Shown here piece after piece: positions 13,776-57,703 of a DNA stretch of 64,000 nucleotides. The notes under the pieces were generated by a model. It was not told where the DNA came from, made no database searches, and saw only the letters and a program-made list of their open reading frames with translations. The position numbers and the translations under genes are program-made. Source of the DNA: Macrostomum lignano (Eukaryota); assembly GCA_002269645.1 (NCBI GenBank), contig NIVC01000578.1, positions 138,549 through 202,548 on the forward strand, in the 5' to 3' direction. How positions within the stretch are numbered: the first letter of the stretch is position 1; every line of letters starts with the position of its first letter.

Positions 13776-22476
<8,701 letters not shown>

Positions 22477-23821: not shown

Positions 23822-26800
23822 ATGCTTGCTCAATACCTTTTGACCTGCTTCTTAATTTTTTCGCTTGGGTTAATTGCGGCTGAACCTGTAAGTTAAGAAG
23901 TTAGAAGTTTGTACCTCAGCTATGAATAAAAACCTGTCCAGAGTATAATAACTATGGATGAGCTGCTAGTCAGTTGCATTTGTATTTCAGTAAAGAAGCC
24001 AACCATAAATATTAAGTTTAAATCTTCTATATTGATCACAATGATTGTTTTAGTATCAGCATCAGCATTGGATAGTGTCTAATACACAGAAAATCTAATG
24101 TATATAATGCAAGTTCTTAATTTTATAAATTTATTAATTTTGAAATTAATTGTGTTATCAATATTTTTTCATTTTTAATCCTATTATTATTTTTATTATA
24201 AAAGAATTCTATATTATACTTGTTTTTTGTTTTTTCTAAATTAGCTAATTAGTTTTTTTAAATAATATTTTCTTAACTTTTGAATTTGACATAATTTTTG
24301 TCAAATGTCACTATTATATATAATATTCAACGAGCATTTCTTATATAATCAAACATATGGTTAACTAGGCAATAAAACTGAATTTTATTATTAGTATACA
24401 TTTAAATAGAATATTGAATATAAAAATTTTAACTAAGAACTAGAAATGCAATGTTTTTAAAATTAAAATCTAAAGTATAGGTTTCATAGTCCAGATCATG
24501 ACAAGTGTATGCCAGAATCAAAATTAGTTTTTTTTCAATTTTATACCAACAGAAAATTTAAAAAAAAGTTATGCTAAGTCCTAAATTGTTTATACGCTAC
24601 TTTTTAATGAATATATATTTTTAGAAATTCAAAACTTTTACTAAACTTTAAAATGGCTGTTTTTTGTTAAAAATAGATATTCTTTGTTATAATTTTGATT
24701 TTCTTGTGATTGCTTTAATATTTTCTATTTTAGTTTCCAGTTATTTTTAAAGAGCTTTTGATGTTGGTTGATATTTAACTATACAATTACATTAGCCTTG
24801 AACTTGTCTATTTTTTGTACACCAACTGTGTATACTTCATGTTGAGCCTAAAAATTCTATATGCCAAGATTGTCAGCAAGAGCAAAAATATGCCAAAATT
24901 TCTGGCATAAAGGCCTTCTAGACTATGGTATAGGTTTCTGTTGTTGGTATCTAAAGTAACTAATAGTAAAAAAATAGTAACTAATTCAGGTTTAGTTAAA
25001 AAGAGATTCAAATTGTATATTGTATTTACTAATTTAATTTGCATATATCTATGTACTTAACTTTGTTTTAAAATGATTTCTAAGTATAATAAAAATAGCT
25101 ATATACAAACTTTAATAAGTCTGAGGGAGATATATATCAAAATGCTATAGTAAGGCATTAGTAAATGCTTCTTCAAATGTGTTAAGCTTCCTTTTAGCTC
25201 ATTTTATCATTGTTATCTAACTTTATCTAATACCTGTTTATTTTTGTCTAATTTACAAATGTATTTCAATTTAACTTTTAGGTTGGCCTAGGCTCAGTCA
25301 CATTAGTTAATGACCTGAAGGAACTGAAACGAATTGTAAAGTCGCATAACAATGTTCTATTGGTCTTCCAGAAGAAAAGTAAGATATAACTATCGTGATC
25401 CTTATTGATTTGTAAAATCATCTAAATGATTGTGCTATCTGAATATTTTTAGAGAACTCTGCATCCGACTGGAACCAGATTCTCACTGAAGTCTCCAACC
25501 AAATGATTGGCCAGGCCAGCATTGTTAAAGTGGATTGCAGGTGCGCCAATAATGCTATTTTTATAATTGAAAATGACAGAAATCTATATGGCTTTAGCCT
25601 AGTGACCCATGCTCGATTCCAAGTGAAGTCACATTAACTTGATGCTAAATTGGAATCTCAGCTTGGGTCTGCGCGTCCAATTTTGGCCCTCATGGGCCAA
25701 CCAAGCGAATATGCCTTGAAGCAGTCGCCAACTTCATCCTCAACTCTTTCAGCGCAGAGAAGAAGGCCTGCAAATACTTCAAGGCATCGCCCAGCCCTGT
25801 GCAAATCCAGCACTACAAGTGAGCTCTCAGCTATAGACTGCCTTTTGATTCAGAATAATTGCAGAACCCTGATAAATTTTCATTTATTTATTTAGGGACG
25901 GCAAGTTCAACGTGAATTACGATCGCAAAAAATCTGTCAAGGTGAGCTGAGGCCTCAATTTTAGCAATTAATTATGTTTCCTAATTATAACTTAAGCCTC
26001 ATTTTATTAATAATTTCAGTCTCTACGATCCTTCCTGGAAGATCCCACCGGAGATGTTCCCTGGGATGAGGAGCCCACAGCTGAGACCGTTACCCACCTG
26101 GCTAATCAAGCCGTGAGTAGCTGTTCACGTGGCCTGTCTCATGCAGTTTGTTCACGTGGACAGGAGGCAGAGTAGCTGTTCACCTGGGCTGTCTCATGCA
26201 GAGTTTGTTCACGTGAGCAGGAGGCAGAGTAGCTGTTCACCTGGCCTGTCTCATGCAGAGTTTGTTCACGTGGACAGGAGGCAGAGTAGCTGTTCACCTG
26301 GCCTGTCTCATGCAGAGTTTGTTCACGTGGACAGGAGGCAGAGTAGCTGTTCACCTGGCCTGTCTCATGCAGTTTGTTCACGTGGACAGGAGGCAGAGTA
26401 GCTGTTCACCTGGCCTGTCTCATGCAGAGTTTGTTCACGTGGACAGGAGGCAGAGTAGCTGTTCACCTGGCCTGTCTCATGCAGAGTTTGTTCACGTGGA
26501 CAGGAGGCAGAGTAGCTGTTCACCTGGCCTGTCTCATGCAGTTTGTTCACGTGGACAGGAGGCAGAGTAGCTGTTCACCTGGCCTGTCTCATGCAGAGTT
26601 TGTTCACGTGGACAGGAGGCAGAGTAGCTGTTCACCTGGCCTGTCTCATGCAGTTTGTTCACGTGGACAGGAGGCAGAGTAGCTGTTCACCTGGCCTGTC
26701 TCATGCAGAGTTTGTTCACGTGGACAGGAGGCAGAGTAGCTGTTCACCTGGCCTGTCTCATGCAGAGTTTGTTCACGTGGACAGGAGGCAGAGTAGCTGT

Positions 26801-29800
26801 TCACCTGGCCTGTCTCATGCAGAGTTTGTTCACGTGGACAGGAGGCAGAGTAGCTGTTCACCTGGCCTGTCTCATGCAGAGTTTGTTCACGTGGACAGGA
26901 GGCAGAGTAGCTGTTCACCTGGCCTGTCTCATGCAGAGTTTGTTCACGTGGACAGGAGGCAGAGTAGCTGTTCACCTGGCCTGTCTCATGCAGAGTTTGT
27001 TCACGTGAGCAGGAGGCAGAGTAGCTGTTCACCTGGCCTGTCTCATGCAGAGTTTGTTCACGTGGACACTTTAGGGGTTGAAGCCCAGTGGTTAGAGCGT
27101 TGGACTCACGACTGGAAGGTTGGGAGTTCGATTCCCGACCCACTCGGAACAATTTGCGTCCTTGAGCAAGACACTTAACTCTGCATTGCTTCAGTTCACC
27201 CAGCTGTAAAATGGGTGCCAGCATTAGCTGGGGTAATTGAGGGTGTGTGGCAACCCCCCCCCCCCCCAGTCCTTGGACTGAACAGGCGTACGTCGCAGCT
27301 TTCAGATGCGCCCCCCCCCCCAATAGCTGCGGCTGAGCTGTCGGTTGTACATCTGGCCATTAGAGCAGGTGTAATCAATTATTATTATTATATTATCACG
27401 TGAACACAATGCAGGGTGCCGTATGCTTTCTTGATAGGAAAATCTAATTAGCTAAAAGCTTGAAGAAGTGTTTGAAGTTGCTTCTTTGCGCATTTTACAG
27501 GAAATGATGCAGCTGTTCAAGCGGACCCGCGTGCCGGTGCTGCTGATGTTCTACGCTCCCTGTAAGTGCGCAGCTTCTGGGCTGATTGGTTTGCGATTGT
27601 GATTGACAGGTCCTGCCGGATTTCAGTGCATTCCCCCGCTTCGCCTCCGCAGGGTGCGGCCACTGCAAGCGGCTCAAGCCCGAGTACGCCAGCGCGGCTG
27701 CCGAGACTAAGGACACTGTGAGCTGGAGCTGGACTTGCCCCAGCTTGACGTTCGAAATGCATTCCCTGGATGCTACCATAAGATTCCCAAAAATTCCTCC
27801 TCAAAAATTTTCCTAATGTTGAATTTCTCTCGTGTTGAATTTCCTTAGTAGAAGATTCCCTACCCAGAATGAAATCCCCTAGGATTCACCTAGGAATTTC
27901 CCCTAGATTTTCCCCTGGGATTCCCTAGTCAGAAAGAATTCCCATTGGGATTCCCCAGTCAGAATGAATTCCCTTGGGATCCCCCCTTGAGAATGAATTC
28001 CCTTGGGATCCCCCCTTGAGAATGAATTCCATTGGGATTCCCCTCTGAGAATGAATTCCCTTGGGATTCCTCTCTGAGAATGAATTCCCTTGGGATTCCC
28101 CTCTGAGAATGAATTCCCTTGGGATTCCCCTCTGAGAATGAATTCCCTTGAGATTCCCCTCTGAGAATGAATTCCCTTGGGATTCACCTCTGAGAATGAA
28201 TTCCCTTGGGATTCCCCTCTGAGAATGAATTCCCTTGGGATTCCCCTCTGAGAGTGAATTCCCTTGGGATTCCCCTCTGAGAATGAATTCCCTTGAGATT
28301 CCCCTCTGAGAATGAATTCCCTTGGGATTCACCTCTGAGAATGAATTCCCTTGGGATTCCCCTCTGAGAATGAATTCCCTTGGGATTCCCCTCTGAGAGT
28401 GAATTCCCTTGGGATTCCCCTCTGAGAATGAATTTTCTTGGTATTCCCCACTCAAGAGAAATTCCTCTAAATCTTTCTACCTTGTATGAACTTCTCTAAA
28501 TAAATTCCCTATCTAGAAGGAATTCCCCTAGAGTTGATTCGCCACTAAGAAAGAATGGCATAGGAAATTCTCCACTGATAAGGAATTCCCTAACCTGAGC
28601 TCATCACCTGTAGAAATCCTAACCAAATGTCCGACACGGCCGAACCGCACTGGCAGGTCCTGGCCGCCATGGACGTGGACAGGGAGGAGAACGCCGGCAT
28701 TCGCCAGGCCTTCAACATCACCGGCTACCCCACGATTATCTACATTAAGTGAGACTGTTGCATCTATAAACATCATTTCTACTATTGACTTCAATTCTGT
28801 GCTAAACTGCTGCTTCGCTTCCAGAGGCAACGAGCCCATTCCCTATGGCGGCACTTTCACCAAAGACGGAATTTTGAGCTGGCTGAAAAAGTAATTCATT
28901 ACTGCTTGTTATTACACTACTCTCGGCAGTAGCAAGTAGGGTTTATTATCGGTCTGAACATTTTTTGTCGCCCCTAAAAACCCGCCGCCAGCCCCACGCC
29001 GCCGAAAGCGCCGGAGCCTGAGAAGGACTGGGCGGAGGAGGCTCCCGACGTGAAGTTTCTCACCGATAATAACTTTGTGACCAGCCTGGCCCAGCAGAGC
29101 TCGGCTCTCGTCATGTTTTATGCGCCCTGTGAGTAGTCTGAGCGATCTCTGGATGGGGACTCGCCCGTTCTTTGCACAACTCAATTTTCTTTTTTTGAGA
29201 TCCCAATCCTATTTTCCAATCACAAAATCCCCCACCGTCCCATCCCAAAATCCCGTCTTTTCCCATCTCCGAAGCTCCAATTTTCTCATCCCTAAATCAT
29301 CTGTTCTGTTTTCCCATCCCAGAATCTCCCTTTTTCTCACACTCAAATCTCATATTTTCTAATCCCAAATCTTTTATTTTCCCATTCCCAAATCTCATTT
29401 TCTCATTTCTAAATGCAGTTTTTTTCAATCCCTAAGCCCCCATTTTCCCATCCCCAAATCCCCTATTTTCCCTTCCCCAAATCATTCGATTTCCCATGTG
29501 CAGATCTCCTTTAAAAAAATTCATTATTCTCTTCTTTTCCCATCCCCGAATATTATTTTCACATCTCGAAATCCCCTATTTCCCCATTCGAAATCCCCTA
29601 TTTTCCCATAGCCAATCAGCTCCTTTCCCACTCCCAGTTCTCCATTCTCCAATCGCTTAAACCGCCGCCTCCCGCAGGGTGCGGCCACTGCAAGGCGATG
29701 AAGCCGGCCTATCAGGCGGCGGCTCAGCAGCTGAAGCAGCTGGGCATCCCCGGCCTGCTGGCCGCTGTGGACGCCACCAAATATCGAAAAACTGCCGAAC

Positions 29801-32800
29801 AGTTCAAGGTCACGGGATTTCCTTCCGGTGAGACGACTCAAAATTTAATTACCTATAATAAGGCGTTTCTAATTAGGTCAGGGAATTACCTGTGCATTTG
29901 GTGCTTTGTTTCTGACTTTGAAAATTTCAACTAATTGTGCTTTGAATATCCCACAGCTGAGAATCCCCCAAGTATCCCACAGCTGAGAATCCCCCAAGTA
30001 TCCCACAGCTGAGATTCCCCTAAGTATCCCACAGCTGAGAATCCCCCAAGTATCCCACAGCTGAGAATCCCCCAAGTATCCCACAGCTGAGAATCCCCCA
30101 AATATCCCACAGCTGAGACTCCCCCAAATATCCCACAGAGAATCCCGAATATCCCACAGCTGAGAATCCCGAATACCCCACAGAGAATCCCGAATATCCC
30201 ACAGCTGAGAATCCCTCGAATATCCCACGGAGAATCCCGAATATCCCACAGCTGAGAATCCCGAATATCCCACAGCTGAGAATCCCCCAAATATCCTACA
30301 GCTGAGAATCCCGAATATCCCACAGCTGAGAATCCCGAATATCCCACAGCTGAGAATCCCGAATATCCCACAGCTGAGACTCCCCCAAATATCCCACAGA
30401 GAATCCCGAATATCCCACAGCTGAGAATCCCTCGAATATCCCACGGAGAATCCCGAATATCCCACAGCTGAGAATCCCGAATATCTCACAGAGAATCCCG
30501 AATATCTCACAGAGAATCCCGAATATCCCACAGCTGGGAATCCCGAATATCCCACAGAGAATCCCGAATATCCCACAGCTGGGAATCCTGAATATCCCAC
30601 AGCTGAGAATCCCGAATATCCCACAGCTGAGAATCCCAAATACCCACAGCTGAGAATCCCCCAAATATCCCACAGCTGAGAATCCCGAATATCCCACAGC
30701 TGAGAATCCCGAATATCCCACAGCTGAGAATCCCGAATATCCCACAGCTGAGAATCCCGAATATCCCACAGCTGAGAATCCCGAATATCCCACAGCTGAG
30801 AATCCCGAATATCCCACAGCTGAGAATCCCGAATATCCCACAGCTGAGAATCCCGAATATCCCACAGCTGAGAATCCCGAATATCCCACAGCTGAGAATC
30901 CCGAATATCCCACAGCTGAGAATCCCGAATATCCCACAGCTGAGAATCCCGAATATCCCACAGCTGAGAATCCCGAATATCCCACAGCTGAGAATCCCGA
31001 ATATCCCACAGCTGAGAATCCCGAATATCCCACAGCTGAGAATCCCAAATACCCACAGCTGAGAATCCCCCAAATATCCCACAGCTGAGAATCCCGAATA
31101 TCCCACAGCTGAGAATCCCCCAAATATCCCACAGCTGAGAATCCCCCAAATATCCCACAGCTGAGAATCCCGAATATCCCACAGCTGAGAATCCCGAATA
31201 TCCCACAGCTGAGAATCCCGAATATCCCACAGCTGAGAATCCCGAATATCCCACAGCTGAGAATCCCGAATCCAGCCTGGGTTTTCCTGTCCATGCCGAA
31301 TGCTCCGATCTGTCTCAATATCTGCAGTGCTTTGCCAGTCTTCTCTGCAAAAAAGACGATGAATTTAACAGACTAAATTTCTGTTTTTCGTTTCAGTGAA
31401 ATATTTCCAGTGAGTTGCTCCGCATTGTTGTCAGTAGTATCGTAGCAGTAGTTTACTTGTTGCTCCCAATATTCTCTAATATCGCACCGCACGCTTAAAT
31501 TTGCATTAAACAATACTACTTACTAAGACCGCATTGCTAGTAGTTCAATATGCATGCGTTTAAACAATTTTATTTTGCTTTATGTTTTTGTTTGGTCCTA
31601 GTATTATTTTTAGTGCATAACCTTGTGAATGTTAATTTATGTTAATGTCCAGTAAGTGTCCATATGTGTAAACCAAAATGTGTCAGGTTGACATGATTGA
31701 CAGCAGCTCACAGGTGAGCTCAACTGACTGAGGTGATTATGATTGACAGCTCACAGGTGAGCTCAACTGCAGAATACTTTTAAGCATGGTTTAACCCCTG
31801 TTACTTTACAACCAGTACTCGTCAGTGAACTCACACCTGCTGAGTGTGATAATTAACGCGGATTACAGTCAACATGCCACTCACTGACGTCAATCGCATT
31901 TCCAGAAATGCCGAGTACAAATTTGACTTCAACGAGCGGGCCGAAGACAAAATCGTTGAGTTCATGAAAGAGTGAGTTGAGAGTAGAGATGCTGAGTCCC
32001 CTTTTCAAAGTGATTGTCAACCCGCCTCATCAGCCAGAATCCTTCATCTTCCAACCCCTCCAGCCCCAAGGAACCGCCGCCGCCGCCAGTCGAGGTGCCA
32101 TGGTCCGAGGAGCCCAGCGAGGTGCACCACCTGGCCCACGGCAACTTTGCCGACTTTCTCAAGAAGAAGCGCCGCACTCTGGTGATGTTCTATGCGCCCT
32201 GTGAGTTCGATGCGAATTGTGCTCAACTGACCTTGGTTAACTGTTCCCTGTTCCTATGGGAAAGCTGCATTCTTCTGGTCTTTCGCTTATCCGTCTCTTC
32301 ATTCCTTCATCCGCTTCTTCACCTGTTCCTCCGCCCCTTCTCCTGTTTATCCCCTGCTTCACCTGTTCCTCCGCCCCTTCTCCTGTTTACCCGCTGCTTC
32401 ACCTGTTCCTCCGCCCCTTCTCCTGTTTATCCGCTGCTTCACCTGTTCCTCCGCCCCTTCTCCTGTTTACCCGCTGCTTCACCTGTTCCTCCGCCCCTTC
32501 TCCTGTTTATCCGCTGCTTCACCTGTTCATCCGCCCCTTCTCCTGTTACCCGCTGCTTCACCTGTTCCTCCGCCCCTTCTCCTGTTTATCCGCTGCTTCA
32601 CCTGTTCATCCGCCCCTTCTCCTGTTACCCGCTGCTTCACCTGTTCCTCCGCCCCTTCTCCTGTTTATCCGCTGCTTCACCTGTTCATCCGCCCCTTCTC
32701 CTGTTACCCGCTGCTTCACCTGTTCCTCCGCCCCTTCTCCTGTTTATCCGCTGCTTCACCTGTTCATCCGCCCCTTCTCCTGTTACCCGCTGCTTCACCT

Positions 32801-33498
32801 GTTCCTCCGCCCCTTCTCCTTTTTATCCGCCCCTTCTCCTGTTTACCCGCTGCTTCACCTGTTCATCCGCCCCTTCTCCTGTTTATCCGCTGCTTCACCT
32901 GTTCCTCGCCCCCTTCTCCTGTTTATCCGCTGCTTCACCTGTTCCTCGGCCCCTTCTCCTGTTTATCCACCCTTCTGTTTATCCGCCCCTTCTCCTTTTC
33001 ATCCGCCCCTTCTTTTCATCCGCCCCTTCTCCTGTTTATCCGCCCCTTCTCCTTTTCATCCGCCCCTTTTTTTCATCCGCCCCTTCTCCTGTTTATCCGC
33101 CCCTTCTCCTATTCATCCGCCCCTTCTGGTTATCCGCCCCTTCTCCTCCTTATCCGCCCCTTTTCCCGTTCATCCGTCCCTTTCGCCCTTTCGCCATTGA
33201 GCCTCCCAGTCCATCTCCGCCGCTCCGCCCCGCCGCAGGGTGCGGCCACTGCAAGCGGGCCAAGCCGGAGTTCACCAAGGCGGCAGCCGAGCTGGCGGCC
33301 TCCGCGCCCAAGACGGCGCTGGCGGCGGTGGACTGCACCAGCGGGGAGAACTCGGCGCTGTGCCAGGCGGAGGGCGTAAGCGGCTACCCCACCATCAAGC
33401 ACTATTACTTCGGCAAGCGGGCCACCGACTATGCTGGCGGCAGGGAGGCGGCCGAGTTCGTCAAGTACATGACCAGCGAGGACAAAGTGGAGCTGTGA
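23822..33498 (+). CDS. PDIA5: Protein disulfide-isomerase A5 (PDIR) orthologue, 16 exons, 500 aa
   Basis: Phase-consistent exons: 23822-23887 (signal peptide MLAQYLLTCFLIFSLGLIAAEP), 25282-25378, 25453-25540, 25753-25818, 25896-25941, 26020-26112, 27501-27561, 27653-27717, 28657-28748, 28825-28890, 28992-29128, 29678-29827, 31397-31409, 31906-31971, 32064-32200, 33239-33498; total 1503 nt. N-terminal non-catalytic domain (DLKELKRIVKSHNNVLL, HYKDGKFNVNYDR, FLEDPTGDVPWDEEP), three WCGHC thioredoxin domains and C-terminal KVEL give the b-a-a-a layout of PDIA5. Confidence 0.93.
26115..27068. repeat. 57 bp (55 bp variant) intronic minisatellite
   Basis: About 17 copies of GTGGACAGGAGGCAGAGTAGCTGTTCACCTGGCCTGTCTCATGCAGAGTTTGTTCAC, beginning at the exon-6 donor. 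Confidence 0.97.
27074..27396 (+). mobile_element. tRNA-derived SINE with a CORE-like central domain and (TTA)n tail
   Basis: A box AGCCCAGTGGTTAGAGCG; B box GGGAGTTCGATTCCC; CORE-like GTCCTTGAGCAAGACACTTAACTC...CCCAGCTGTAAAATGGGT; ATTATTATTATATTAT tail; imperfect flanking repeat TCACGTGGACAC / TCACGTGAACAC. Confidence 0.85.
27930..28440. repeat. 29 bp intronic minisatellite (GAATGAATTCCCTTGGGATTCCCCTCTGA)
   Basis: About 17 copies. Confidence 0.95.
29945..31270. repeat. 24 bp intronic minisatellite (CCCACAGCTGAGAATCCCGAATAT) with 21-26 bp variants
   Basis: About 55 copies in intron 12 of PDIA5. Confidence 0.97.
32310..33190. repeat. ~40 bp pyrimidine-rich intronic minisatellite (CCGCTGCTTCACCTGTTCCTCCGCCCCTTCTCCTGTTTAT)
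   Basis: About 22 copies, decaying toward the acceptor at 33238. Confidence 0.93.
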
Positions 33499-36670: not shown

Positions 36671-37574
36671 AGGAGCCATGCAGATTTGCAGTGTGCACAG
36701 CCGAAGCTGTACGCTAATCCTGCCCGCATGGCAGCGCCACCGGTTAGTTAACCCGGAATCAGCTGCCGAACGAATACCGATCGATTAGCGCCGAATGGTT
36801 AATCGCGGTGCCAAGCAAAAGTTACATTTTAAAGAAATAAATTTTATATTTTAAAGCCGAACAGAAAACACCTGCGGCCGTAATGCATGCAGTTTATGCT
36901 TTTTCTCTGAAGCAGGCATTGCTTGGGGAGCCGTTTCTGAGGAATGCCCTGGGCCGGATCGGGGACAGCGCCGGGTCTGCGGCAGCGGGGAAGGGGGTGG
37001 CGGCGCAGATCACACGCGGAGCTGTTTGAGTCGGGGATCGAGGCAGGTGGCAGCGGAGACTCCTCCCTACTGCTGCACTGGTAGCCGTGATTGGAGCAGG
37101 GACTCAGCGCAGGTGGAACTCCTGGCCCGCACTGCCCCCGAGTTGATCTTTCTGGGGATAAATTGGCGAGCTCAGCCGAGCTGGGATCGGAGTCCGTGTT
37201 CTCATTGGGAAGATCGGCCTGAGGATCCCATAAGATCCCATTCGGCTTGGCTTCCGGGGTAAGTCGCCACCTTTCCCGCCTCCCAGCCGGTCATAAGTAC
37301 TTGTGCCGCAGACACCACACTGCATGTGCTGCCCTGTGCCTGCGTTTGCAAGTTCTTAAAACTGCGGGAGACTGCGCGCCTGCCGATGGCTGTCAGGATA
37401 TTTTCCCAATTTTTTGTGGGCGCTTTTTGGTGCCAAGCAGAGTCCGTTTACCAACTGCATCACCACCTCCGAACTTCACATTCCCCAAACTCACATTCCC
37501 CAAACTCACATTCCCCAAACTCCACATTCCCCAAACTCCACATTCCCCCAAAACTCACATTCCCCAAACTCTTA

Positions 37575-38518
37575 CAGAAGGGGGCGCCAGCTACAGAAGG
37601 GGCGCCAGCTACAGAAGGGGCGCCAGCTACAGAAGGGGCGCCAGCTACAGAGGGGGCGCCAGCTACAGAAGGGGCGCCAGCTACAGAGGGGGCTCCAGCT
37701 ACAGAAGGGGCGCCAGCTACAGAGGGGACTCCAGCTACAGAAGGGGCTCCAGCTACAGAAGGGGCGCCAGCTACAGAAGGGGCTCCAGCTACAGAAGGGA
37801 CGCCAGCTACAGAGGGGGCTCCAGCTACAGAGGGGGCTCCAGCTACAGAAGGGGCTCCAGCTACAGAAGGGGCGCCAGCTACAGAAGGGGCGCCAGCTAC
37901 AGAAGGGGCGCCAGCTACAGAGGGGACTCCAGCTACAGAAGGGGCGCCAGCTACAGAGTGTGGTGCTGGAGCGCTGAGCTCTAGGCACTGCAGTGACTAA
38001 CTAACTAGTTATCATGTACGTGCACCGGCAACATGCACTTTCTCTCTTGCTCTCTTTGGCCTGTCTGGCTCTACCCCTTAGATTTCATGTACGTAGTATT
38101 TGTCATCACGTGACCCCTTTCGTTATTGATCTATCAACCCTCGCTCATGTTATCATTAAATAGGCTGTTTGCTAAGTGAAATACATCTTGCAATTTTGCC
38201 ATCTACACGGCACGACACAGGAAAGGCGCCAGCTACAGAGGGGACGCCAGCTACAGAGGGGACACCGGCTACAGAGGGGACACCGGCTACAGAGGGGGCG
38301 CCAGCTACAGAGGGGACACTGGCTACGGAGGGGGCGCCAGCTACAGAGGGGACACCGGCTACGGAGGGGGCGCCAGCTACAGAGGGGACACCGGCTACGG
38401 AGGGGGCGCCAGCTACATAGGGGACGCCAGCTACAGAGGGGACACCGGCTACAGAGGGGGCGCCAGCTACAGAGGGGGCGCCAGCTACAGAGGGGGCGCC
38501 AGCTACAGAGGGGGCGCC
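37575..38518. repeat. Two arrays of one 18 bp unit (GCGCCAGCTACAGAGGGG): 37575-37957 and 38222-38518
   Basis: Same unit on both sides of a ~265 bp unique spacer; preceded by a 15 bp CACATTCCCCAAACT array (37475-37570). Confidence 0.95.
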
Positions 38519-39040
38519 CCAACGACCCGGCATTTAGCTTTTTCGGGAGCTGTCAGTATACAATGTCCAGCTCCTAAGCGGATTAGCTGTGTCTTGCCCC
38601 GAACTAAAAGTACATGAAAATAAGCAACGAAGTTCCATTTAGCCTTAAATGCGCCCAATCTCGCGTGGCGTTGCCACAAGAGATCACTGCTGCATGGCAG
38701 TTTGAAATCCAGGATATGCATCCGGGTTTTTTACTAGCAGGTGCTTTCGTTTGCTTCTGATGCTACGCATAAAATCTGTAGAAGATGCAAAAATTATTGA
38801 GGAACCCGCTGAAACTATCTGTGCTACTTTTGTTAGTAGCATATGGCTAAAAATCTAGAAAAAAACCTAGGATCAAGGATCGTCGTATGGGTTCATTTGT
38901 TTGTACTTTAACTTAAACTGAAGCGTGCATGCACATTGTCAGTGTTCAGAAAGGTGTTTGGTCTCGAAGGTACAACATTTGAACTGTTATTACTGAAACT
39001 GACTATGCTTAAATGCTATGCTATGCTATCATCAGGTCTT

Positions 39041-40514: not shown

Positions 40515-41312
40515 ATGTACCTCGCAGGCCCTCTGCTGATGCTTCTGTGCGCTCGGCTCTGCTTGGCTGCGGAATTCGACTTCGTCGGCTGCTACAGGGA
40601 CAACACAGATGATGCCAGGGACCTCGTCGGACTGGACGGCATGTCCTCCATCGGGCCCTACACGGTGATCACAGCAAAAAATTGCGTGATCCGGAACGAC
40701 ATGACGCTGCAGCTGTGCAGCCAGATCTGCGAGCTCGGCAACTTCAAGTACTTCGGTGCGCAATACAGGAAGGAGTGCTTCTGCGGAAACTCGTACGGCA
40801 GTCAGGGCGCCGCTCCCGAGAGCGACTGCAACATGAACTGCGCTGGCAACGCTAGCCAGATCTGCGGCTCTGGAGGCCGAAATTCGGTTTACCTGCAGGT
40901 TAACCACCGTCCCAGTGAGCAGCGGATTTCTCGCAATTTTTGTGGCTGAGGGATTTGATAGACTAACTGACCCTCTATGAGACTACTGACACTGCCCGAT
41001 GACATTTCACACTTTACATCACACTGACTTTTCAAACATTGATAATCAGCTGAACTGAACTGCATTTTGCTCATTGCAGTCGGCAACAAGTTCGTCGAAG
41101 CTCCCCGAGTCTACCTGAACCCGACCTCCTCCGGCGGGCCCTTCTACCGCACCTTGCAGCCGGCTAGAAGCCTCATCGACTGCCTGCTGGGTTGCGACGC
41201 GAGCTGCCAGGCTACCCTGTTCCACCAGGGTACCTGCTACCTGCTGAAATTGCCGGCTCTGCCGCAGCAGCTGGTCGGCGTTCAGGACGGAAAGTTCTTT
41301 GTCCGTGGCTAG
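40515..41312 (+). CDS. Secreted WSC-domain protein with a C-terminal Cys-containing PAN/apple-like module, 210 aa, 2 exons
   Basis: Signal peptide MYLAGPLLMLLCARLCLA; WSC motif FVGCYRD...MTLQLCSQIC...YFGAQYRKECFCGN...CNMNCAGNASQICG..RNSVY. Exons 40515-40914 and 41080-41312 join in phase 1. The PAN-like call is tentative. Confidence 0.85.
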
Positions 41313-41467: not shown

Positions 41468-46346
<4,879 letters not shown>

Positions 46347-47396
46347 TTATCCCAGGATTGCTCCCAGGCGAGGCTCCGGCAGGCCCCCGGTCCACACTCT
46401 GCAAGATCAGGGGGCGGGAGGCCGGCTGCGGGCTTGGGACACAGGCGCCAGGTCGAGTTGACAGCCGACGCCCGAGCCCTCCCCCACAAGAGCGGCCCTC
46501 GAGAACCCGTGTGGTACCAGTTGCAACTAAGGGCTGTCGATGGGTAGTTGGCGCTTAGCCAGCAGCCAACTACTTAGCAGCCACCTGCCCCGCAAAAAAG
46601 CAGCAGGGGGGATCCGTCCCCCACCAGCAGACCAAGACGAGGAAGCTAGCCGCTTCCACGCCAGGCCAGAACGAAAAGGAGGGGGAAGAGCCTCCTCGAA
46701 AAACGAAAAGCTGGCGGATGTCACAGAGTCCCTCGGTTTAAGTTGCCGTTTGCCCCCCTCTGTTAATCCTTGGGTAAATCCCTTAATCTGTGCTTTTTCA
46801 GTTCTCTTAAAAACTTTGGCTTGTTTCTAATTTAACAAAATCCTTTATGCCAGATCCACTTTAAGTTTTTTTAGTTTCAGTAATAACAGTTCGAATGTTG
46901 TACCTTCGAAACCAAACACCTTTGTGAGCACTGACTATGTGCAGGTACGCTTCAGTTCAAGTTGCAATTAAAGTGAAAAAGAATAGGAAACCGAAACTAA
47001 AAGACTATTGATTTTTCTAGGAACTGGGTTTGAACTTTTTGGATCTTTTCGCAACCCCAGCAAAATAAATATACGGGTCTCGGCTTCTCAGCCACTCTCT
47101 CCAGCATTGACAAAATGCGCCTTGCTTGTCGTCTTTGAATTTGTACATGTACGTGGCAGCGAGTTTCTCGAGCCTGAAAGTCGCTGCCTGCGCCGCAGAG
47201 CGGCTTGGAGAAAAATCTGACAATATTTTATGGCGTGAGCGTCTAGCTAATTAAAAACTAAGAACAAAAAATTGTAAGTGCACCTCGGTCCTTCAGTTAT
47301 TTTACGCATCTGTGGGGCAAGCACCTGGACCAGACTAACGCGTAAATTCATTGCTTTTCAGTAAAACTATTTGTAAGAGTACTGATATTCTTTAAT

Positions 47397-47602
47397 GCTC
47401 GCTAAGGCGTATTCAGCATGCCAGTGAAGTATGAGACAGACCAGGCCTATGATCTAAGCCCTAAGGTCTGCGATGCTTCACGCCTGCCCCCATCTTCAGC
47501 AGGCAAAGGCTGGCGGGAGGTCTGTACCCTCTATAGTCAACCCAGGGGTACTCGTCCCCGCGAGTGTTCATGGCAGACCCTCGGGCTGCTGGACAGACTG
47601 GG
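47397..47602 (+). ncRNA. HDV/CPEB3-like self-cleaving ribozyme candidate 1
   Basis: P1 GCUCGC 47397-402 / GCGAGU 47560-565 (G1.U); P2 CCCAG 47541-545 / CUGGG 47598-602; P3 GGG/CCC; L3 UACUCGU; P1.1 A47550-U47567 and C47551-G47566; P4 GCAG.CC/GG.CUGC; predicted catalytic C47594 in C-A-G-A. Folded by hand only. Confidence 0.75.
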
Positions 47603-48118
47603 CTCCGACGCTGGGTACCCATCCAGAGGCTCCGGCCGAATTTGGGTATGCAGGTCTGGCTCGCCAGTCCGCAGGCCGTGGTACTGCTTAACGTACCCTC
47701 TAATACCTAAGGTGTTGACCGAGCCTAGTATTTTATTATTTTCCCCATTATTTTTCATTTATTAATTAATCATTTTTTATCATAATTAATCTTTCATAAC
47801 AAAAATATTAAAAATATTCATCGATTACTTGATGCAAACTATGTTGCGCAAACTGCTGTAAAGCAAAGCGTTTGCTTTACATTGTGTGTGAGTTGTTACG
47901 TACTATTTTATTGCATCCTGCTGTAACACATTCATCACAGAAGCAGTTATTGTAACCACCGATCTGCTTACTTTCTACAAAGAACGCTCCAGCGAATATT
48001 GACATATCTGAATAAGTTCATAGATAATTGCAGACTTTGCTCAGTTTAGAGAGACATCATCTGTTCACATCTTAAGAACTGCTATGTTTGTAACAATATC
48101 CAATACTGCACATTTTCT

Positions 48119-48775
48119 ATGAACATGAATCTGCCAGACCCCGGCCTTCAAGGTCTTCACAGTGCTTCTGCCAGGCCCTCGGGACCGTCAAAGGCCCTTC
48201 TGGTGAAGGACTTTATCAACCGTGATGGCGAGGAGCCCGCCTTTGGCGAGAAGCCCAGAGTCCGGACCGAGCAGATCTCTGCGGGTCAGTGGGTAGCAGG
48301 CAGCAACCGAATCCTGCTGAAACTCCTCGACGAGGGCTCCCTGGTCACCGTCAAGAATGGCGCGGTGGATCTTAAACAGCTGAAGTCCTACGTTCGCTAC
48401 TGTGTTCAGTTCGTCGAGTTTATGCACCAGGGTTTCAGTCAGGCCGCCCTCAACTGTTACGATGAAGACTTCAGGATCCTGCAAAATCAGTCGAGCGGCA
48501 GCTGGGAGCGGGAGTCGCTGCAGCTGCTATCCAAGCACATTCTGGCACCAAAGTCAAGTCAGGGCGGCAACGCGATCCCCCAGCGCACCAACTTCAAGTC
48601 CAGTAGGCCAAAGCAGCAGCAGTCCGGCTTCATCGGCCCGATCGATCCTGAGGGGCGGCAGCTGTGCGTGAAGTTCAACCGCAACAGCTGCCTACGGCGC
48701 GACTGCAAGTTCAGACACGTCTGCTCCGCCTGCTACGAGGCGCACCCGCGCCAGTTCTGCACTTCAAAAAACTAG
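48119..48775 (+). CDS. DIRS/Ngaro-type gag-like ORF with a C-terminal zinc finger (probably 5'-truncated)
   Basis: ALLVKDFI...QWVAGSNRIL...YDEDFRILQ and CVKFNRNSCLRRDCKFRHVCSACYEAHPRQFC; overlaps the RT ORF, as is usual in DIRS-order elements. Confidence 0.75.
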   Translation: MNMNLPDPGLQGLHSASARPSGPSKALLVKDFINRDGEEPAFGEKPRVRTEQISAGQWVAGSNRILLKLLDEGSLVTVKNGAVDLKQLKSYVRYCVQFVEFMHQGFSQAALNCYDEDFRILQNQSSGSWERESLQLLSKHILAPKSSQGGNAIPQRTNFKSSRPKQQQSGFIGPIDPEGRQLCVKFNRNSCLRRDCKFRHVCSACYEAHPRQFCTSKN

Positions 48776-50375
48776 ATCGCGGCTGGCCGGGGAGCTCAAG
48801 TGGCAGCGCAGCTGCCCCGGCGGAAGCCAAAGTCGAACCCCCGCTGCCCCCCGGCTGGCCCTTTCCCAAGCCCCTCGAGTCCGTTGCTTTCTCATCCGAC
48901 CTCGCCACAGCCGCCTGGGAAGCTGAGCTGACTGACGACCCTGACCGCGAATTCCTGCTGAATGGCATCCGCAACGGTTTCCAACTCACCTGCCCTGACC
49001 CGTCAGAAAGAGCTTCAACTGTGTCAGAAACCCAGAACTACCTATCAGTCAACAGTGACCGGCAGCTGGTCGAGCAGCAGGTGCGGGAGGAAGTCCTAAA
49101 TGGCCGCTACGTTCAAGTCAGTGACAAGCCGGAGGTTATCAGTGCTCTTGGCGCCATTCCGAAGAGCAACAACAAGATTCGACTGATCCACGACTGCTCT
49201 AATCCTCCGGGTCTCTCCTTAAACAGCCAATTTTCTTCCAACTACCGAATCAAGTTCGAGACCGTCAGTAACTTCACCGCTAAGCTGCAACCCGGTTGGT
49301 TCATGGCCAAAGTCGACCTCGCCAATGCCTACCAGAGTGTCGGCATTAGCCCGCAGGATTTTCGGCTCACCGGTTTAAAGTGGAAATTTAGCAACCAGCG
49401 AAGCTCCTCGTACATCTGCGACACACGGCTCTCCTTCGGCGCTGCCGCCTCCGTTGAAATTTTTCACCGCCTCAGCCAGGCCGTCAAGCGCATGATGCAG
49501 AGACGGGGCTTCAACGATATCGGCAGTTATCTCGACGACTTCGCCGTAGCAGCCCCCAGCAAGGACGACTGCCAGCTCGCTCTCGACACCCTGCTCAATC
49601 TGCTGCGGAAGCTTGGCTTCTCCATCAACTGGAGCAAGGTGGTGGCGCCGTGCATCAGACTGGTTTACCTGGGCGTCCTCATCGACACCGTCAGCGGCCT
49701 GCTGGAGCTTCCGAAGGACAAGCTCGACGCCACCAAGTCTCAGCTGCAGTCCGCGCTCTCTCGAAAGCGCATCACCAAGCGCCAACTCCAATAGCTCTGT
49801 GACCGCATCAACTGGGTCTGCCAGGTGGTCCGCATCGGGAGATGCTTCCTGAGACCACTCCTGCTCGAGCTCGGCAACCTGAAGCAGCAGCGGCATAAAC
49901 TGCGCGTGCACAATGATCTCCGCGAGATCCTTAGCTGGTGGGACGCCTGCCTGGCCGCCTCCCCCAGCTGCAAAATCTGGTGTTTCACCGGGCCCAGCTG
50001 GGCCATCGAGTCCGACGCGTCCAACTGGGGCGGCTGCGGCATCATCTGCGGCTCAGACACCACCAGCTGGCTCATCATGGACTGGCACCGCGAGTCGACC
50101 GAGATCGAGCCGCTGCACATCAACTTCAAGGAAATTCTTGCTCCTGTGCTCACGGCCCTGCATTTCCAGCAGCAGCTGCAACCAGGCAGCCAGCTCGTCA
50201 TCTACTCTGACAGCACCACCGCAGTCGGCGCCATCAACAAGGGCTCGTCGCCAAATCGGCTCGTCAACTCGGCTCTGCAACAGCTGATGCTCCTCGCTGC
50301 GCACCGCGACCTCTCCGTCCAGGCCTTCCACGTCCCCGGGACATTCCAGATCTTCGCTGCTAGTGGCAGCCGAGC
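48664..50375 (+). pseudogene. DIRS/Ngaro-type reverse transcriptase - RNase H with an in-frame TAG (49792-49794); no tyrosine recombinase present
   Basis: WEAELTDDPDREFLLNGIRNGF, KIRLIHDCS, WFMAKVDLANAY, RLSFGAAAS, YLDDF, YLGVLID; after the stop ESDASNWGG, HINFKE, DSTTAVGAINKG, FHVPG...SR. Homology ends at the second ribozyme/LINE start. Confidence 0.85.
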
Positions 50376-50581
50376 GCATGCATTGGTGGGTTCAGCACGC
50401 CTGTGTAGCATGAGACAGACTAGGCTTATGAGCTAAGGTCTGCGATCCTACACACCTGCACCCCCTCTATTCTGGTGCAGGAATGGCAGGAGAACTCTCT
50501 CCAAGCTGACTCACAAGCCGACCCAGGGGTTCACGTCCCGCATGTGTTCAAGGCAGCTCTAGGGCTGCTGGACTGACTGGG
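50376..50581 (+). ncRNA. HDV/CPEB3-like self-cleaving ribozyme candidate 2, at the 5' end of LINE 2
   Basis: P1 GCAUGC 50376-381 / GCAUGU 50540-545 (G1.U); P2 CCCAG 50522-526 / CUGGG 50577-581; P3 GGG/CCC; L3 UUCACGU; P1.1 C50532-G50546 plus U.U; P4 GCAGCU/GGCUGC; predicted catalytic C50573 in C-U-G-A. Folded by hand only. Confidence 0.78.
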
Positions 50582-52865
50582 CTCCGGCGGCGGCAAACCC
50601 ACCCGTAGTCTTGACCTCGGTCTTGGCTGTGTTGGGTACGGGCTCCGCCCGGAAGTGAACCTGTGCGTATCAGGTACCTCTGGCCACGGCTCTGAGGAAC
50701 AGGTATCCCCCTCTGACCTTAACAGGGTATGCGGCCAGTCCGCAGGCTCCGGGGACAGCCTCTTGTCCCCCCAGGGCCCAGTGTAGTACCGCGCTGATGG
50801 TCCTTTGGTTCGGCCTCTGGTTTCTCCAAGCCGGGCTCTTAGCTGGGGACTTTCTCGGTTGCTAGCGGTCGGGCCGGTAAGGGCTTAAGCCACCCCCCGG
50901 TCGCTATCTTTTGGCTGGATGTTGGGTTTGCGGTTACGGCCCAGCAGCTTCTCACCTTTAGTCCCCATTCGCTTTTCACGACTCATGGAGTATTCATTTA
51001 CCTCCGACACGTCCGAGGCTGCTGGAGCACCAACCGAGGTTGGTACCGCGGCCCAGCCGGACATTTGCAACACCGGAACCCCCTGTGCCTCCCAGTCAGC
51101 CCCTGCCGCCGCTCAGGACAATACCAAAGCGGCTGGACAACAGGACAGCGGACCTCAGACCTCTAAGAAGAAGGCCCGTAGCATTGCTCGCTACAAAGCT
51201 TTTCTCCAGCGCAAAGCGGAGGAGCGGAGAAGAGCGAAAGCCTCCCCTCCGGCCGCCTCCGAGGAGGGTGCCGGTAACTCTGCGAATCCCGCGGAGGAGC
51301 CGACATCCGACAAGGGGGCGGACCCCGCGCGCCGGTCAGAAGCGTCAGGTGCCGCCGAAGCTCCTGGTGCGGCTGGCCCCTCCCGTGGCGGGACCTCTGC
51401 CCGTGTGGAAACTCCCACGGCCGCGGAGGGATCCAAAGCAGGGGGTGCTGGCCAAACCGCTAAGCCGAAGCGCACCTATGCGGCTATGGCCAAGAGGCAG
51501 CCGGTGCTGATCATTCAAGGCCAGGAGACGCCTCTTACGGCCGAAAAGCTCGATCAAATCTGGCGCAGGTTGGACTCCCACCTGGTCAAGATGGCCTTGA
51601 GCGGTACCGCTATTCAAGTCCAAAAGACGAAAGTCGAGGACCAAGCCCTTCATATCCAGCCCGCCGACAGACAGTCTGGGCAGCAGCTCCTCGAATGCTG
51701 AAAGCCTTCGACTGGGGTACGGAGCTGGAGAACCTGTTCATCTACAGGGAGGACAAGCGACCCCGGACACACCGGCACCGTGCCTGGATTCCGGCTCGCA
51801 GCTGCATCACCAAGGCCGACGAGCTGCGTCACCTGCTAGTGGCTTCCAACCCGGAGCTACCGGCCAATGGTGTCGTAGTTCACGAGACCATCTCCAAGCC
51901 GGGCGGAGACGGTTTCACGGCTATTCTTGGACTGTCGGATAGCTGGATGCTCCGCTACCCGGACATGTCCATCATCTCTGTCGGACTGTTGCAGATTCAG
52001 CTCTTTAGCTTCGAGTCTGACGCCACCCGCCCACCGCCCCCAGAGAAACGTAAGCGGGCAGTCGGGGGCTCTGCCGGGCGGAAACGCCCAGGAAAAGAAG
52101 CTCCCGGCCGTCACGACCCCTCCGAGGACGTGGACCCTGTCAGAGGGAAAGCCGCGAAAGCTGCAGCAACAGGCGGACGTGGAAAGGGCCGGAAACCCGC
52201 CCGGAACACTATCCGCTCTGGTCTGACTCAGCGCGCGAAGCAGCTGCTGGACACCGCCAAGGTCAACAACCGCAGCAACCCCCAGACCAGTGTCACAACT
52301 GCCCACCCCTGGAAAACCGGGCCGAGAGCGAGAATGCCGCCCTGGTGGTGGCCCCGCCCTCGACCATGGAGACCATCCGGGAGGAGCCCATGGAACTGGA
52401 GCCTGAAGCCAACAGCGAGGCAGAAGAGGCAGCCCTCCTGCACAACTCGCCCTGAGCCGACAGGAAGCTGCGCGGACCACTCGTGGAATCCCCGGAGTGG
52501 ACATCCTGCATCGCGGCCTCTACCAACCTGATGCAGTTTCAAACTTCGTGATTCTACTTCAGGAGCCCTGGACGAAGAAAGGTAAGATTCTGAATATTCC
52601 TGCTGGTTTTGACTTTTTCAGGACCCTCAAAACCCCAGAGCAGCTATTTTCGTATCTACCCACCTCAAAGCTTGGCACAGACCGGACCTCTCTGACAGAG
52701 ACCTCTGTGTCATCATCGCCTCGATTTATATCCCTGGCGATGGCCCCGCGGTTCCACCCAACCTCACTTCCCTCGTGGACTACTGCTCTGACCGCAGGTT
52801 CGAGCTGTTGGTGGCGGGCGACGCCAACGCCCACAACACACACTGGGGCAGTAACACCTCCAACA
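50376..52865 (+). mobile_element. 3'-truncated, frameshifted LOA-like LINE (5' UTR, ORF1 and start of the endonuclease)
   Basis: ORF1 from ATG 50985 with a frameshift at ~51695 (RTYAAMA; HRHRAWIP...LLVASNPELP), homologous to ORF1 of the minus-strand LINE; APE fragments ILLQEPW, PRAAI, ASIY, AGDANAHNTHWGS; ends abruptly near 52865. Confidence 0.82.
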
Positions 52866-53527
52866 GCACAATCTACCTCAATCTACCCCAACACATCTAT
52901 CTACCCCAACACACCCCTCGTGTCCCCCATTAGACGCCTAAATATGGTGTTAAAACCACAATCTCTATCTGTAGTCGTAATTTTACATACTACTACATAG
53001 TACCCCCATAGACATCAAAAACACACACTACACACACTATTACAAAAACGCCCCAATACAATAAATACATAAAAACAAACTAATTAAGATTATGTAAAAT
53101 TACAAAATTTTCGCAAAAATCGAGCTCTAAAATTAGCATTTAAAAATGTAAAATTTTCGTTAAAATTGTATAAAAAATAGATATAGGATGTGTTACGAGT
53201 ATCTATCTTAATAATCTTTAAGAAAACGGAAGAAGAATTTTTAAGGTAGTAAATTTCGAGTGTTTTAGCAACACATTTAAGCCGCGGAGGCAAAGACAGC
53301 AATGCATTTAACACATCTCGGAGATTCCAAATAAACAACATGCAGATTCCAAACAAGCAACTAGGAGATTCCGAATAAACATCTAGTGGATTCCAAATAA
53401 CCAACTTGGAGATTCTAAACAACCAACTAGGAGATTCCGAATAAACATCAACGATGTACAGCTTTCTATAGTATATGGATGCATTATACCAAAATTTAGT
53501 GCAAATCTTAAATGTTTAAGTACATTT

Positions 53528-55140: not shown

Positions 55141-57703
55141 TCATCGTTCATTATTCAGTTTAGATACGTTTTTACTCACTAGGGAAAAAGAAGATGAATG
55201 GCTGTGTCTTTGCACGGCGCTGCCAGAAGCGGGACTTTGAGTCGCTGCCACCAAAGACCGTCTTTGCACGGCGCTGCCAGAAGCGGGACTTTGAGTCGCT
55301 GCCACCAGAGATCGTCTTTGCACGGCGCTGCCAGAAGCGGGGCTTGGAGTCGCTGCCACCAGAGACTGTCTTTTTACGGCGCTGCCAGAAGCGGGGCTTG
55401 GAGTCGCTGCCACCAGAGACTGTCTTTGTACGGCGCTGCCAGAAGCGGGACTTTGAGTCGCTGCCACCAGAGACTGTCTTTGTACGGCGCTGCCAGAAGC
55501 GGGGCTTGGAGTCGCTGCCACCAGAGACTGTCTTTGTACGGCGCTGCCAGAAGCGGGGCTTGGAGTCGCTGCCACCAGAGACTGTCTTTGTACGGCGCTG
55601 CCAGAAGCGGGACTTTGAGTCGCTGCCACCAGAGACTGTCTTTGTACGGCGCTGCCAGAAGCGGGGCTTGGAGTCGCTGCCACCAGAGACTGTCTTTGTA
55701 CGGCGCTGTCAGAAGCGGGGCTTTGAGTCTGGACTCCGGAAAGCAGCTGGCTTCCTGTGCGATGCGACCGCCCCTTTAATCGGTCACCGCCATGCTTTAG
55801 CTGCTGTCTGCAAGTATTTCTTACAGATTGTTCAGAGGGCCTGCCGGCTTCAGCGGTCGCGCCATAGATGAATGTGATTGCTTCTGTTAGGAAAAAAGTT
55901 GAAAGTTACTATGAATAGCATGCACTGTGCTCGACTAATTTCTTGATATTTAGCTCTAAAAGTCTCATTGAACGTTGATTAAGTAGACTTACTTTGGAAA
56001 TGGCTGAGCAGAGTGCTCTGAAATCCAAGCTGCGCATCAGTAAGGTTGGTCGCAACTCCAGCAGCAACAGCTCGGCTTCGCATGTCTGACCCGATTAAAT
56101 TAATAACCGCCTGCATCTCTTTCGACAAGCTCTCGTTAAGCATTGCCATTAAAGCATCGGACCACTTGTCTCGCTTGCATGAACGTAGCAGGCTCTTCTG
56201 TTTAGATTTTTACAGGTGAGAATACTTATAGATTATTATTTCAGTGATAGTACTAGTGCGCTTTGAGTAGTAGTTAGAGCATTTCTTCTAATGAAAAGAA
56301 AATAAAAAACTCTGTCATGAACTTACCAAAGTAGAAATATGTTCATTTGGACTGGAAGCGAATTGCACATATTTTTCCCAGGAGTTGATCGGCCAGAATG
56401 AAGGCTCAGAATTATCAGTTGGAATGTCAGCGCCAACAGGTTCCAAAAAGCGTAGCACGCTCTGCACTTCAGTGCGCATTGCGGTGATTTGTTTGGTCAA
56501 ACTATTTTCTAATGCTTTCAATTCATTCTTGCGCATAGTAAGTTCGCGTAGGGCATATAAGGACAGAAACTTGATGCCTCTTGGACTTTCCAGCTCAAAG
56601 CTAACACCGGCTTGGATCTGCTCTTCTAGTTTTCTAAGAAAGCCAGAACCAAAATTAAAAGATGAAATGGTGGGAGGCGACTTAGGAATCGTCGATCGAT
56701 CATCTGCTACGAACTCAGCTTCTATTTCAGCTTCCGCCTCAGCTTCCACCTCAGCTCCCATCTCAGCTTCCACCTCAGCTTCCGCCTCAGCTTCCGCCTC
56801 AGCTCCCATCTCAGCTTCCACCTCAGCTCCGATCTCAGCTTCCACCTCATCTTCCGCTTCAGCTTCCGCCTCAGCTTCCACTTCAGCTTCCGCCTCAGCT
56901 TCCACTTCAGCTTCCGCCTCAGCTTCCGCCTCAGCTTCCATATCGGCGTCTACGCCAGCTTCTGCTTCATCATCACTAATAGGAGGCATTGGCGCTAACT
57001 GTGCAATCGTAGGCGGATGTTGTTTAGGCAGCAAAGCTGGAGGTTGCAAACAGCGGCTGCTCTTATCTTCGAAGATTGCCTCGGAATCGGTGGCTGAGCC
57101 GTCTGACAGATTCTGTTTGGGATGGTTACGGCATGAGAAATTATCAAGTTAATGTCAGTTTTAAAGATTATTTTCACATTTAATTTCTTCCCTTTTCTTA
57201 AAAAATAGTTTAAAAGGTAAAACGGAGAAAACAAAGTTCTCGATAAAAATTATATGGGCTGTGCTTAATTTTACCTTAGTCTGGTAATGCCTTCGTGCTT
57301 TCTTCATGTCACGCTCCTGAAAGACTCTGGGTTGAACCAACTCGAGAATTCGGTTCAGTCGGGTCTTTTTGGCCACCAATTCACGCACAAAGCGGAAGCT
57401 CCCAGGCTCTAGGTTGTTGCTTAGTATTACCTTTAAATTAATGAGAAAATATGAGCGTACAAATATTAGATCGATTCAAGAATTTTAACATTTCAATCGT
57501 TGGGATCGGTTGCTTACCTGAATAATTAGAGCAGAGTAAAAACAGCCTTCATACAAGGCTTCACACTTCCACTTCTCAGTGGAGTCCCTCTTTTCTAACC
57601 ATTCCTCTTCCTTAAGGTTTTGAAAGCCTTCAGGAAGCTTCACTTCGCTTTCCGAGACCTCAACAATTTGACGGTCGTCTTTAAAGATCACTAAAAACTT
57701 CAT
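55141..57703 (-). CDS. Five-exon transposon-associated protein (691 aa), DUF4806-like accessory protein
   Basis: Phase-consistent GT-AG exons: 57703-57518, 57430-57275, 57112-56327, 56197-55993, 55883-55141 (2076 nt). Acidic EAEAEV tract, coiled coil, [12 protein letters not shown] motif and ten in-frame 18-aa repeats. The domain call is from recalled motif resemblance only. Confidence 0.7.
55200..55730. repeat. 54 bp coding minisatellite (SLVAAT[PQ][11 protein letters not shown] on the minus strand)
   Basis: About 10 copies in frame within the last exon of the partner gene. Confidence 0.93.

Follow-up and report, generated by a model that had tools for sequence, protein, structure and literature searches.

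At LINE 5' ends, HDV-like ribozymes are established for R2, R4, R6, RTE, SART, Baggins, and L1Tc (PMC11620745). When such a LINE is transcribed together with upstream sequence, HDV-like self-cleavage releases its 5' end (PMC11620745; PMC3774820), and the ranges published for HDV-like ribozymes comprise 6–7 bp for P1, a minimum of 5 bp for P2, a P4 that varies greatly, and 23 to >700 nt for J1/2 (PMC3774820; for P1 and P2 also PMC4908430). Compensatory variation in P1 between related elements is known from Drosophila R2 (PMC3774820), and structured J1/2 domains speed up cleavage by holding P1 and P2 together (PMC4908430). The only flatworm LINE ribozymes that we found in the literature are twister variants of Schistosoma (PMC8501958); a literature search for HDV-like ribozymes returned no report for Macrostomum and nothing relevant for flatworms.

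A 64,000-nt stretch of contig NIVC01000578.1 of Macrostomum lignano (hereafter, the window) contains a pair of direct repeats that can be compared with these systems. Both members, copy 2 upstream (47397–47602) and copy 1 downstream (50376–50581), lie on the plus strand, and repeat analysis of the window places their starts 2979 nt apart. The initial annotation of copy 2 had the spacing right, but described the partner as lying upstream. With a probability of about 0.7, we read the segment 47397–47724 as the 5'-terminal ~328 nt of a second, diverged M. lignano member of a LINE family that starts with an HDV-like self-cleaving ribozyme. Among LINEs, both this mechanism and this arrangement are textbook knowledge, and no new mechanism is opened by the locus. 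Features of both copies are listed in Table 1.

Table 1. Predicted ribozyme parts and adjoining segments of the two copies (window coordinates).
Feature	Position	Strand	Evidence or remark
P1, 5' strand, GCUCGC	47397-47402	+	Sequence, descriptor, RNAalifold, two compensated pairs relative to copy 1
J1/2 peripheral domain, 138 nt, structured	47403-47540	+	MFE folds of both copies
P2, CCCAG/CUGGG, 5 bp	47541-47545 with 47598-47602	+	Descriptor, pair counting
P3, GGG/CCC	47546-47548 with 47557-47559	+	Sequence, descriptor, RNAalifold
L3, UACUCGU	47549-47555	+	Copy 1 L3 is UUCACGU
P1, 3' strand, GCGAGU	47560-47565	+	Followed by G47566 and U47567, the P1.1 partners
P4 hairpin, GGCAG/CUGCU plus CC/GG, bulged A47577, loop 47580-83	47572-47590	+	Descriptor, RNAalifold, pair counting
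J4/2, GGACAGA	47591-47597	+	Candidate catalytic C47594, 3 nt before P2'
P2, 3' strand, and possible P2 extension	47598-47609	+	GAC 47607-09 with GUC 47536-38
Rest of GC-rich island	47610-47724	+	Weakly homologous to LINE 5' UTR 50702-50794
Copy 1 ribozyme	50376-50589	+	P1 50376-81/50540-45; P2 50522-26/50577-81; P3 50527-29/50537-39
Copy 1 ribozyme, remaining parts	L3 50530-36; P4 50552-58/50563-69	+	Candidate catalytic C50573
LINE body after copy 1	50590-52864	+	5' UTR, ORF1, start of APE endonuclease, then truncated

The repeat itself is certainly beyond chance, the expected number of chance matches to its patterns in the window being 0. BLAST aligned the two copies with 72.5% identity over 211 nt (47412–47610 vs. 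50391–50589), and 52 of the 205 columns of a MAFFT alignment differ, with the ribozyme core as the less diverged part (15% vs. 25% divergence over the whole alignment). Neither patterns with up to three mismatches nor an nhmmer profile of the two copies detected a third copy within the 64-kb window. Weak nhmmer matches that recur every ~57 nt on the minus strand at about 26168–27064 are unrelated to the ribozyme, and their recurrence indicates a tandem array with a period of ~57 nt. The start of the homology is abrupt. Upstream of the two predicted G1 sites, 14 of 60 positions are identical, which is the level expected by chance, so that the flanks are unrelated; homology then sets in within 15 nt of the predicted cleavage site (7 of the first 15 nt identical, 80–90% in the next stretch). 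In both insertions (n = 2), the element–flank junction falls on the predicted cleavage site at a resolution of ~15 nt.

Judged from their sequences, both copies thread onto the nested double pseudoknot of HDV-like ribozymes. Our descriptor of this topology, which tests the strand order P1, P2, P3, L3, P3', P1', P1.1, P4, J4/2, P2', matches exactly 47397–47602 and 50376–50581, with one possible P1 each. RNAalifold, although blind to pseudoknots, recovers P1, P3, and P4 unaided, and the single-sequence MFE fold of copy 1 contains P2, its possible extension, P3, and P4. The predicted cleavage site of copy 2 lies 5' of G47397, which forms a wobble pair with U47565; a 6-bp P1 with G.U in the first position is common to both copies, with GCAUGC/GCAUGU as the P1 strands of copy 1. 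The geometry of copy 2 (P1 of 6 bp, P2 of 5 bp, variable P4, large J1/2) is inside the published range. Residues expected in an HDV-like active site are also present, namely the L3 pattern U.C.CG, a C-G pair in P1.1, and a candidate J4/2 cytosine before a purine-rich linker ending in A. The L3 pattern of both copies agrees with that of HDV and CPEB3. In copy 2, AGA and then P2' (CUGGG) come after C47594; the candidate cytosine has the same spacing in copy 1, and the J4/2 sequences differ only at the nucleotide directly after it. P1.1 consists of A47550-U47567 and C47551-G47566 in copy 2, and of a U.U mismatch and a C-G pair in copy 1. The extra C47556 of copy 2 leaves two pairings for P3: a helix of 3 bp beside which this C is surplus, or one of 4 bp that reduces P2 to 4 bp. 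P4 differs from that of copy 1 by one C-G to U.G change and one indel, with zero pairs broken. What the initial annotation had described as the P1 sequences of the two copies, the full A-U plus C-G P1.1 created by the L3 of copy 2, a P4 that differs yet still pairs, and the retention of C47594 and of the purine-A of J4/2 is borne out by the sequence and by the descriptor. The compensatory changes that it placed in the catalytic core, however, sit in the substrate helix P1, and the change in L3 is one-sided.

A conserved alternative helix, GUUCA/UGGAC, can form in both RNAs (47566–47570 with 47590–47594; 50546–50 with 50569–73 in copy 1) and extends P4. Since it would pair the G of P1.1 with the candidate catalytic C, it could represent an inactive conformation in competition with the ribozyme fold.

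How far this resemblance exceeds chance depends on the comparison made. The descriptor matches six loci in the real window and on average ~3 in windows shuffled in 500-nt blocks. It is thus unspecific on its own, and the weight of the argument rests on the pattern of differences between the copies. Chance descriptor matches at 17.5–19.3 kb fall within the GC-rich stretch (60–72% GC) that holds a 1689-aa ORF (17407–22476, minus strand) without a Pfam match. Nested MFE z-scores of the whole RNAs are modest (−1.7 and −1.8). Searches of the whole window, of a 16-kb region, and of trimmed 3' cores with the HDV-like models of Rfam (HDV_ribozyme, CPEB3, drz-Agam, and others) gave no match, either at the gathering threshold or at E-values up to 10, so that the repeat is not a member of any curated sequence family. 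Scans of metagenomes with core patterns yielded 0 matches in a first round and 53 loci in a second, all of them chance matches confined to a 20-nt pattern.

Between the two copies, 10 substitutions fall in the 66 aligned core columns, and none of them breaks P1, P2, P3, or P4. Four of the 10 compensate each other within two pairs of P1, of which one went from A-U to U-A and the other from U-A to C-G; a fifth turns a C-G pair of P4 into U.G, a sixth creates the A-U pair of P1.1, and the remaining four lie in L3, J1.1/4, L4, and J4/2. When 10 random substitutions were placed on copy 1 in a simulation, the probability was 0.0011 for no broken pair, 0.011 for at least two compensated pairs, and 1.9e-4 for both together, figures that compare two sequences and are post hoc because the structure was chosen with both sequences known. 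Pair counting on the same two sequences used a structure of 47 pairs, with the pseudoknots and the major hairpins of J1/2 among them. In this structure, 96.8% of cells pair and both sides have changed in four pairs, as opposed to 31–44% of cells paired and 0 compensated pairs in slid controls with the 3' partners moved by 1–3 columns. Compensated pairs occur twice in P1 and once each in J1/2 and the tentative extension of P2. P2, P3, and most of P4 are invariant between the two sequences, and P2, being identical in both copies, gives no covariation information. A further pair flagged as compensated by RNAalifold (columns 86–108) was rejected as an alignment artefact, as a loop indel in copy 1 shifts the 3' strand of the hairpin.

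These data also bear on the idea that the repeat is a conserved structured segment of a LINE 5' UTR (an internal promoter, a protein-binding element, or a translation element) whose likeness to an HDV-like ribozyme is fortuitous and which lacks cleavage activity. The ~3 descriptor loci per shuffled window, the lack of an Rfam match in the searches above, the modest thermodynamic z-scores, and the alternative helix that would bury the candidate catalytic C are all in keeping with it. It does not explain, however, why P1, whose strands are ~160 nt apart, stays paired through two double substitutions, why 0 of 10 core substitutions break a core helix, why both copies have U.C.CG in L3, a C 3 nt before P2', and G.U at the site, or why homology begins at the predicted cleavage site, and we regard this idea as very unlikely. 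The structure-level selection on the two lineages proposed in the initial annotation is supported insofar as the HDV-like topology is kept, with two compensated P1 pairs and one C-G to U.G change in P4, but it was overstated for two sequences that have no Rfam match and include one double change in J1/2 that breaks a pair.

The J1/2 domain is structured in both copies, with MFE z-scores of −2.1 and −3.3. Its predicted MFE hairpins in copy 2 span 47406–47422, 47424–47481, 47482–47504, and 47508–47538. One pair is compensated between the copies (A-U to U-A, GUGAAG/CUUCAC vs. GUGUAG/CUACAC; n = 1), three further changes are one-sided and wobble-compatible, and the double change that breaks a pair (U.G to C.C) is in the long hairpin. 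The possible extension of P2 is tentative, since relative to copy 1 one of its pairs is compensated (C-G to U-A) but another is broken, and competes with an alternative hairpin (47508–12/47534–38). Similarly, drz-Agam-2-1 of an Anopheles RTE element has a long, stably folded insert between P1 and P2 and a possible extended P2, and such domains were described to “pinch” P1 and P2 together, resulting in faster cleavage (PMC4908430). In contrast to the single P1.2 helix of drz-Agam-2-1, the 138 nt found here contain three or four hairpins, and the P2 extension is interrupted, ambiguous, and in competition with a J1/2 hairpin.

Going by its sequence, the LINE that begins with copy 1 is degenerate, truncated at the 3' end, and belongs to the two-ORF APE type (R1/LOA-like). 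This LINE has a 5' UTR of 540 nt, an ORF1 from 50919 to about 52100 with a frameshift near 51695, and a frameshifted APE part (52548–52864) equivalent to the first ~115 residues, which aligns to residues 72–185 of ORF2 of an intact LINE on the minus strand of the window (BLASTP and tblastn). For ORF1, a DUF4780 match below threshold is in register with the significant match of a relative, and no homologue of it was detected in a set of 5.8 billion proteins; exact look-ups of ORFs from the window likewise returned no record. The contigs of two distant LINE relatives (L001 and L002, 33–36% amino acid identity) gave no BLAST, Rfam, or descriptor match, and no TSD of at least 8 nt was found at the copy 1 LINE. 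The predicted ribozyme fold is thus located at the extreme 5' end of the LINE, on the coding strand and upstream of ORF1, as in LINEs with 5'-terminal processing, whereas copy 2 has no ORFs and lacks this arrangement.

The minus-strand LINE (41833–46208) is apparently intact and contains two ORFs: ORF1 has 307 aa, and ORF2 (41833–45285) has 1150 aa with APE, RT, and RNase H domains. UniRef entries of M. lignano match this ORF2 with 100% identity, and distant relatives of it carry R1-type names; going by these sequence features, the element may still be active. No HDV-like descriptor match was found in its GC-rich 5' UTR (about 46209–46800), indicating that not all LINEs at this locus carry the ribozyme.

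Between the two copies lies a further retroelement (48119–50370, plus strand) with a gag-like ORF containing a CCCH-like motif, an RT with a YLDD motif, and an RNase H. As the relatives of its RT sit in gag-RT-tyrosine-recombinase units, it is assigned to the DIRS order of tyrosine-recombinase retroelements; it lacks the recombinase gene, as the LINE headed by copy 1 starts at 50376, and copy 1 accordingly adjoins the end of the RNase H-like ORF. Relatives with 45–50% identity are widespread in eukaryotic assemblies, one of them (L057) being a tandem array of gag-RT-YR units. Assignment of the ribozyme to this middle element was rejected, as the related gag-RT-YR units have no HDV-like descriptor match. 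The two segments flank the middle element in direct orientation, 2979 nt apart, and could for this reason be taken for its terminal direct repeats, or else for the products of a local segmental duplication. Both views are hardly tenable, since copy 1 runs unbroken into the LINE ORF1 and the APE domain, the segments are only ~75% identical although the internal ORFs are largely open, and the flanks outside the segments are unrelated.

Copy 2 is part of an island of 328 nt (47397–47724) with a GC content of 59%, embedded between DNA of 36% and 31% GC, the latter being the AT-rich sequence from 47725 onward. The end of the island (47614–47724) aligns to the 5' UTR of copy 1 with a local score of 40, compared to 25.4 ± 4.3 for shuffled sequences. 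On our reading, copy 2 retains only the ribozyme and about 120 nt of UTR. The fading of similarity into AT-rich DNA that had been noted initially was recovered as strong similarity to ~47610 and weak similarity over 47614–47724, with the AT-rich sequence beginning directly afterwards. Likewise, the earlier statement that no ORF follows holds: tblastn detected no LINE ORF after copy 2, and the reading frame of a 115-aa ORF at 47418–47765 is not conserved between the copies. TSDs and a 3' tail had been suggested as features to look for around this solo copy; no TSD of at least 8 nt was found around it, and its sequence has no A-rich or simple-repeat tail.

A discrete island that starts at the predicted cleavage site and is followed by no ORF would also be expected of a complete short non-autonomous retroelement, in which the 5' ribozyme is joined by an internal deletion to the LINE 3' end and which is mobilised in trans by an autonomous LINE. 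The SIDEs (Short Internally Deleted Elements) of Drosophila R2, and R2/R1 SIDEs, provide a precedent (PMC3414825), and target-primed reverse transcription begins at the 3' end, so that 5'-only fragments are not normally produced. Like copy 2, R2 SIDEs combine a ribozyme-bearing LINE 5' end with the absence of coding capacity, but they carry the LINE 3' end and insertion-typical junctions with TSDs (PMC3414825), and copy 2 is known without either. In addition to the missing TSD and tail, the last 110 nt of the island align weakly to the 5' UTR of copy 1 and not to a distinct 3' module, and the AT-rich DNA downstream may be no more than non-coding sequence at the 5' end of the neighbouring DIRS-order element. 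A complete SIDE-like element is therefore considered unlikely, and the context favours a remnant over a non-autonomous element. It is still less probable that copy 2 represents a whole family of ~330-nt ribozyme-capped non-autonomous retroelements in Macrostomum, in which case the conserved 138-nt J1/2 would itself be a functional module, e.g. a platform for LINE-protein binding or translation initiation, instead of a passive brace.

In our favoured view, copy 2 is dead, a remnant of the 5' part of a LINE from a sister subfamily, and not a working gene. The rest of its LINE was most likely lost when a DIRS-order retroelement starting near 47725 inserted, or by a later rearrangement. In relatives of the DIRS-order element, gag is preceded by several hundred non-coding bases, and this would explain the AT-rich stretch 47725–48118. 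As the remainder of the presumed parent LINE is found nowhere in the 64-kb window, this route of truncation is a guess.

By analogy with R2, RTE, Baggins, and L1Tc, a LINE of this family would be transcribed within a longer read-through RNA. In this RNA, the ribozyme would fold with P1, P1.1, and P4 stacked on each other and P2 and P3 forming a second stack, braced by the structured 138-nt J1/2 domain. The J4/2 cytosine (C47594 in copy 2, C50573 in copy 1) would catalyse cleavage immediately 5' of the G with which P1 begins, and the retrotransposition template, hence every full-length insertion, would start at that G.

Compared with the LINE 5'-end ribozymes described so far (PMC11620745; Eickbush & Eickbush, PMC3774820), the M. 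lignano pair has the same topology and, in copy 1, the same 5' position upstream of ORF1 on the same strand, and shares the 6-bp P1 starting with G.U, the 5-bp P2, the variable P4, and the compensatory P1 variation seen in Drosophila R2. It differs in its flatworm host and in its carrier, a two-ORF, R1/LOA-like LINE with APE and probably RNase H that shows no sign of site-specific insertion; moreover, it has no Rfam HDV-like match, and cleavage is here only predicted. If the ribozymes are active, HDV-like 5' processing of LINEs extends to free-living flatworms and to another lineage of APE-type two-ORF LINEs. In the M. lignano genome, which is very rich in repeats, the motif shows annotators where LINEs truly begin at their 5' end, and ribozyme biochemists are offered a natural pair that differs in P1, in the strength of P1.1 (U.U vs. 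A-U), and in the P4 bulge.

With the mammalian CPEB3 ribozyme, copy 1 shares the L3 (UUCACGU) and a weak P1.1 (U.U and C-G, then GU). A primer in PMC10274809, GTTCACGTCGC, supports UUCACGU as the L3 of CPEB3. The CPEB3 ribozyme differs in being intronic, single-copy, and ~68 nt long with a short J1/2, and the likeness probably reflects convergence on a small active-site sequence space, as argued in PMC3774820.

Several other features of the window were observed. The AT-rich DNA after the truncated LINE contains two tandem arrays, one at 55205–55729 (9.7 copies of a 54-nt unit, 95% matches) and one at 53313–53447 (six copies of a 22-nt unit). Long open frames on both strands at 37326–38577 encode short peptide-like repeats (APATEG/PSVAG) and form a coding-looking minisatellite. 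Finally, two plus-strand ORF fragments, one with a WSC carbohydrate-binding domain (40515–40949, E = 1e-16) and one with a thioredoxin domain (32014–33498, E = 3e-15), are probably exons of host genes.
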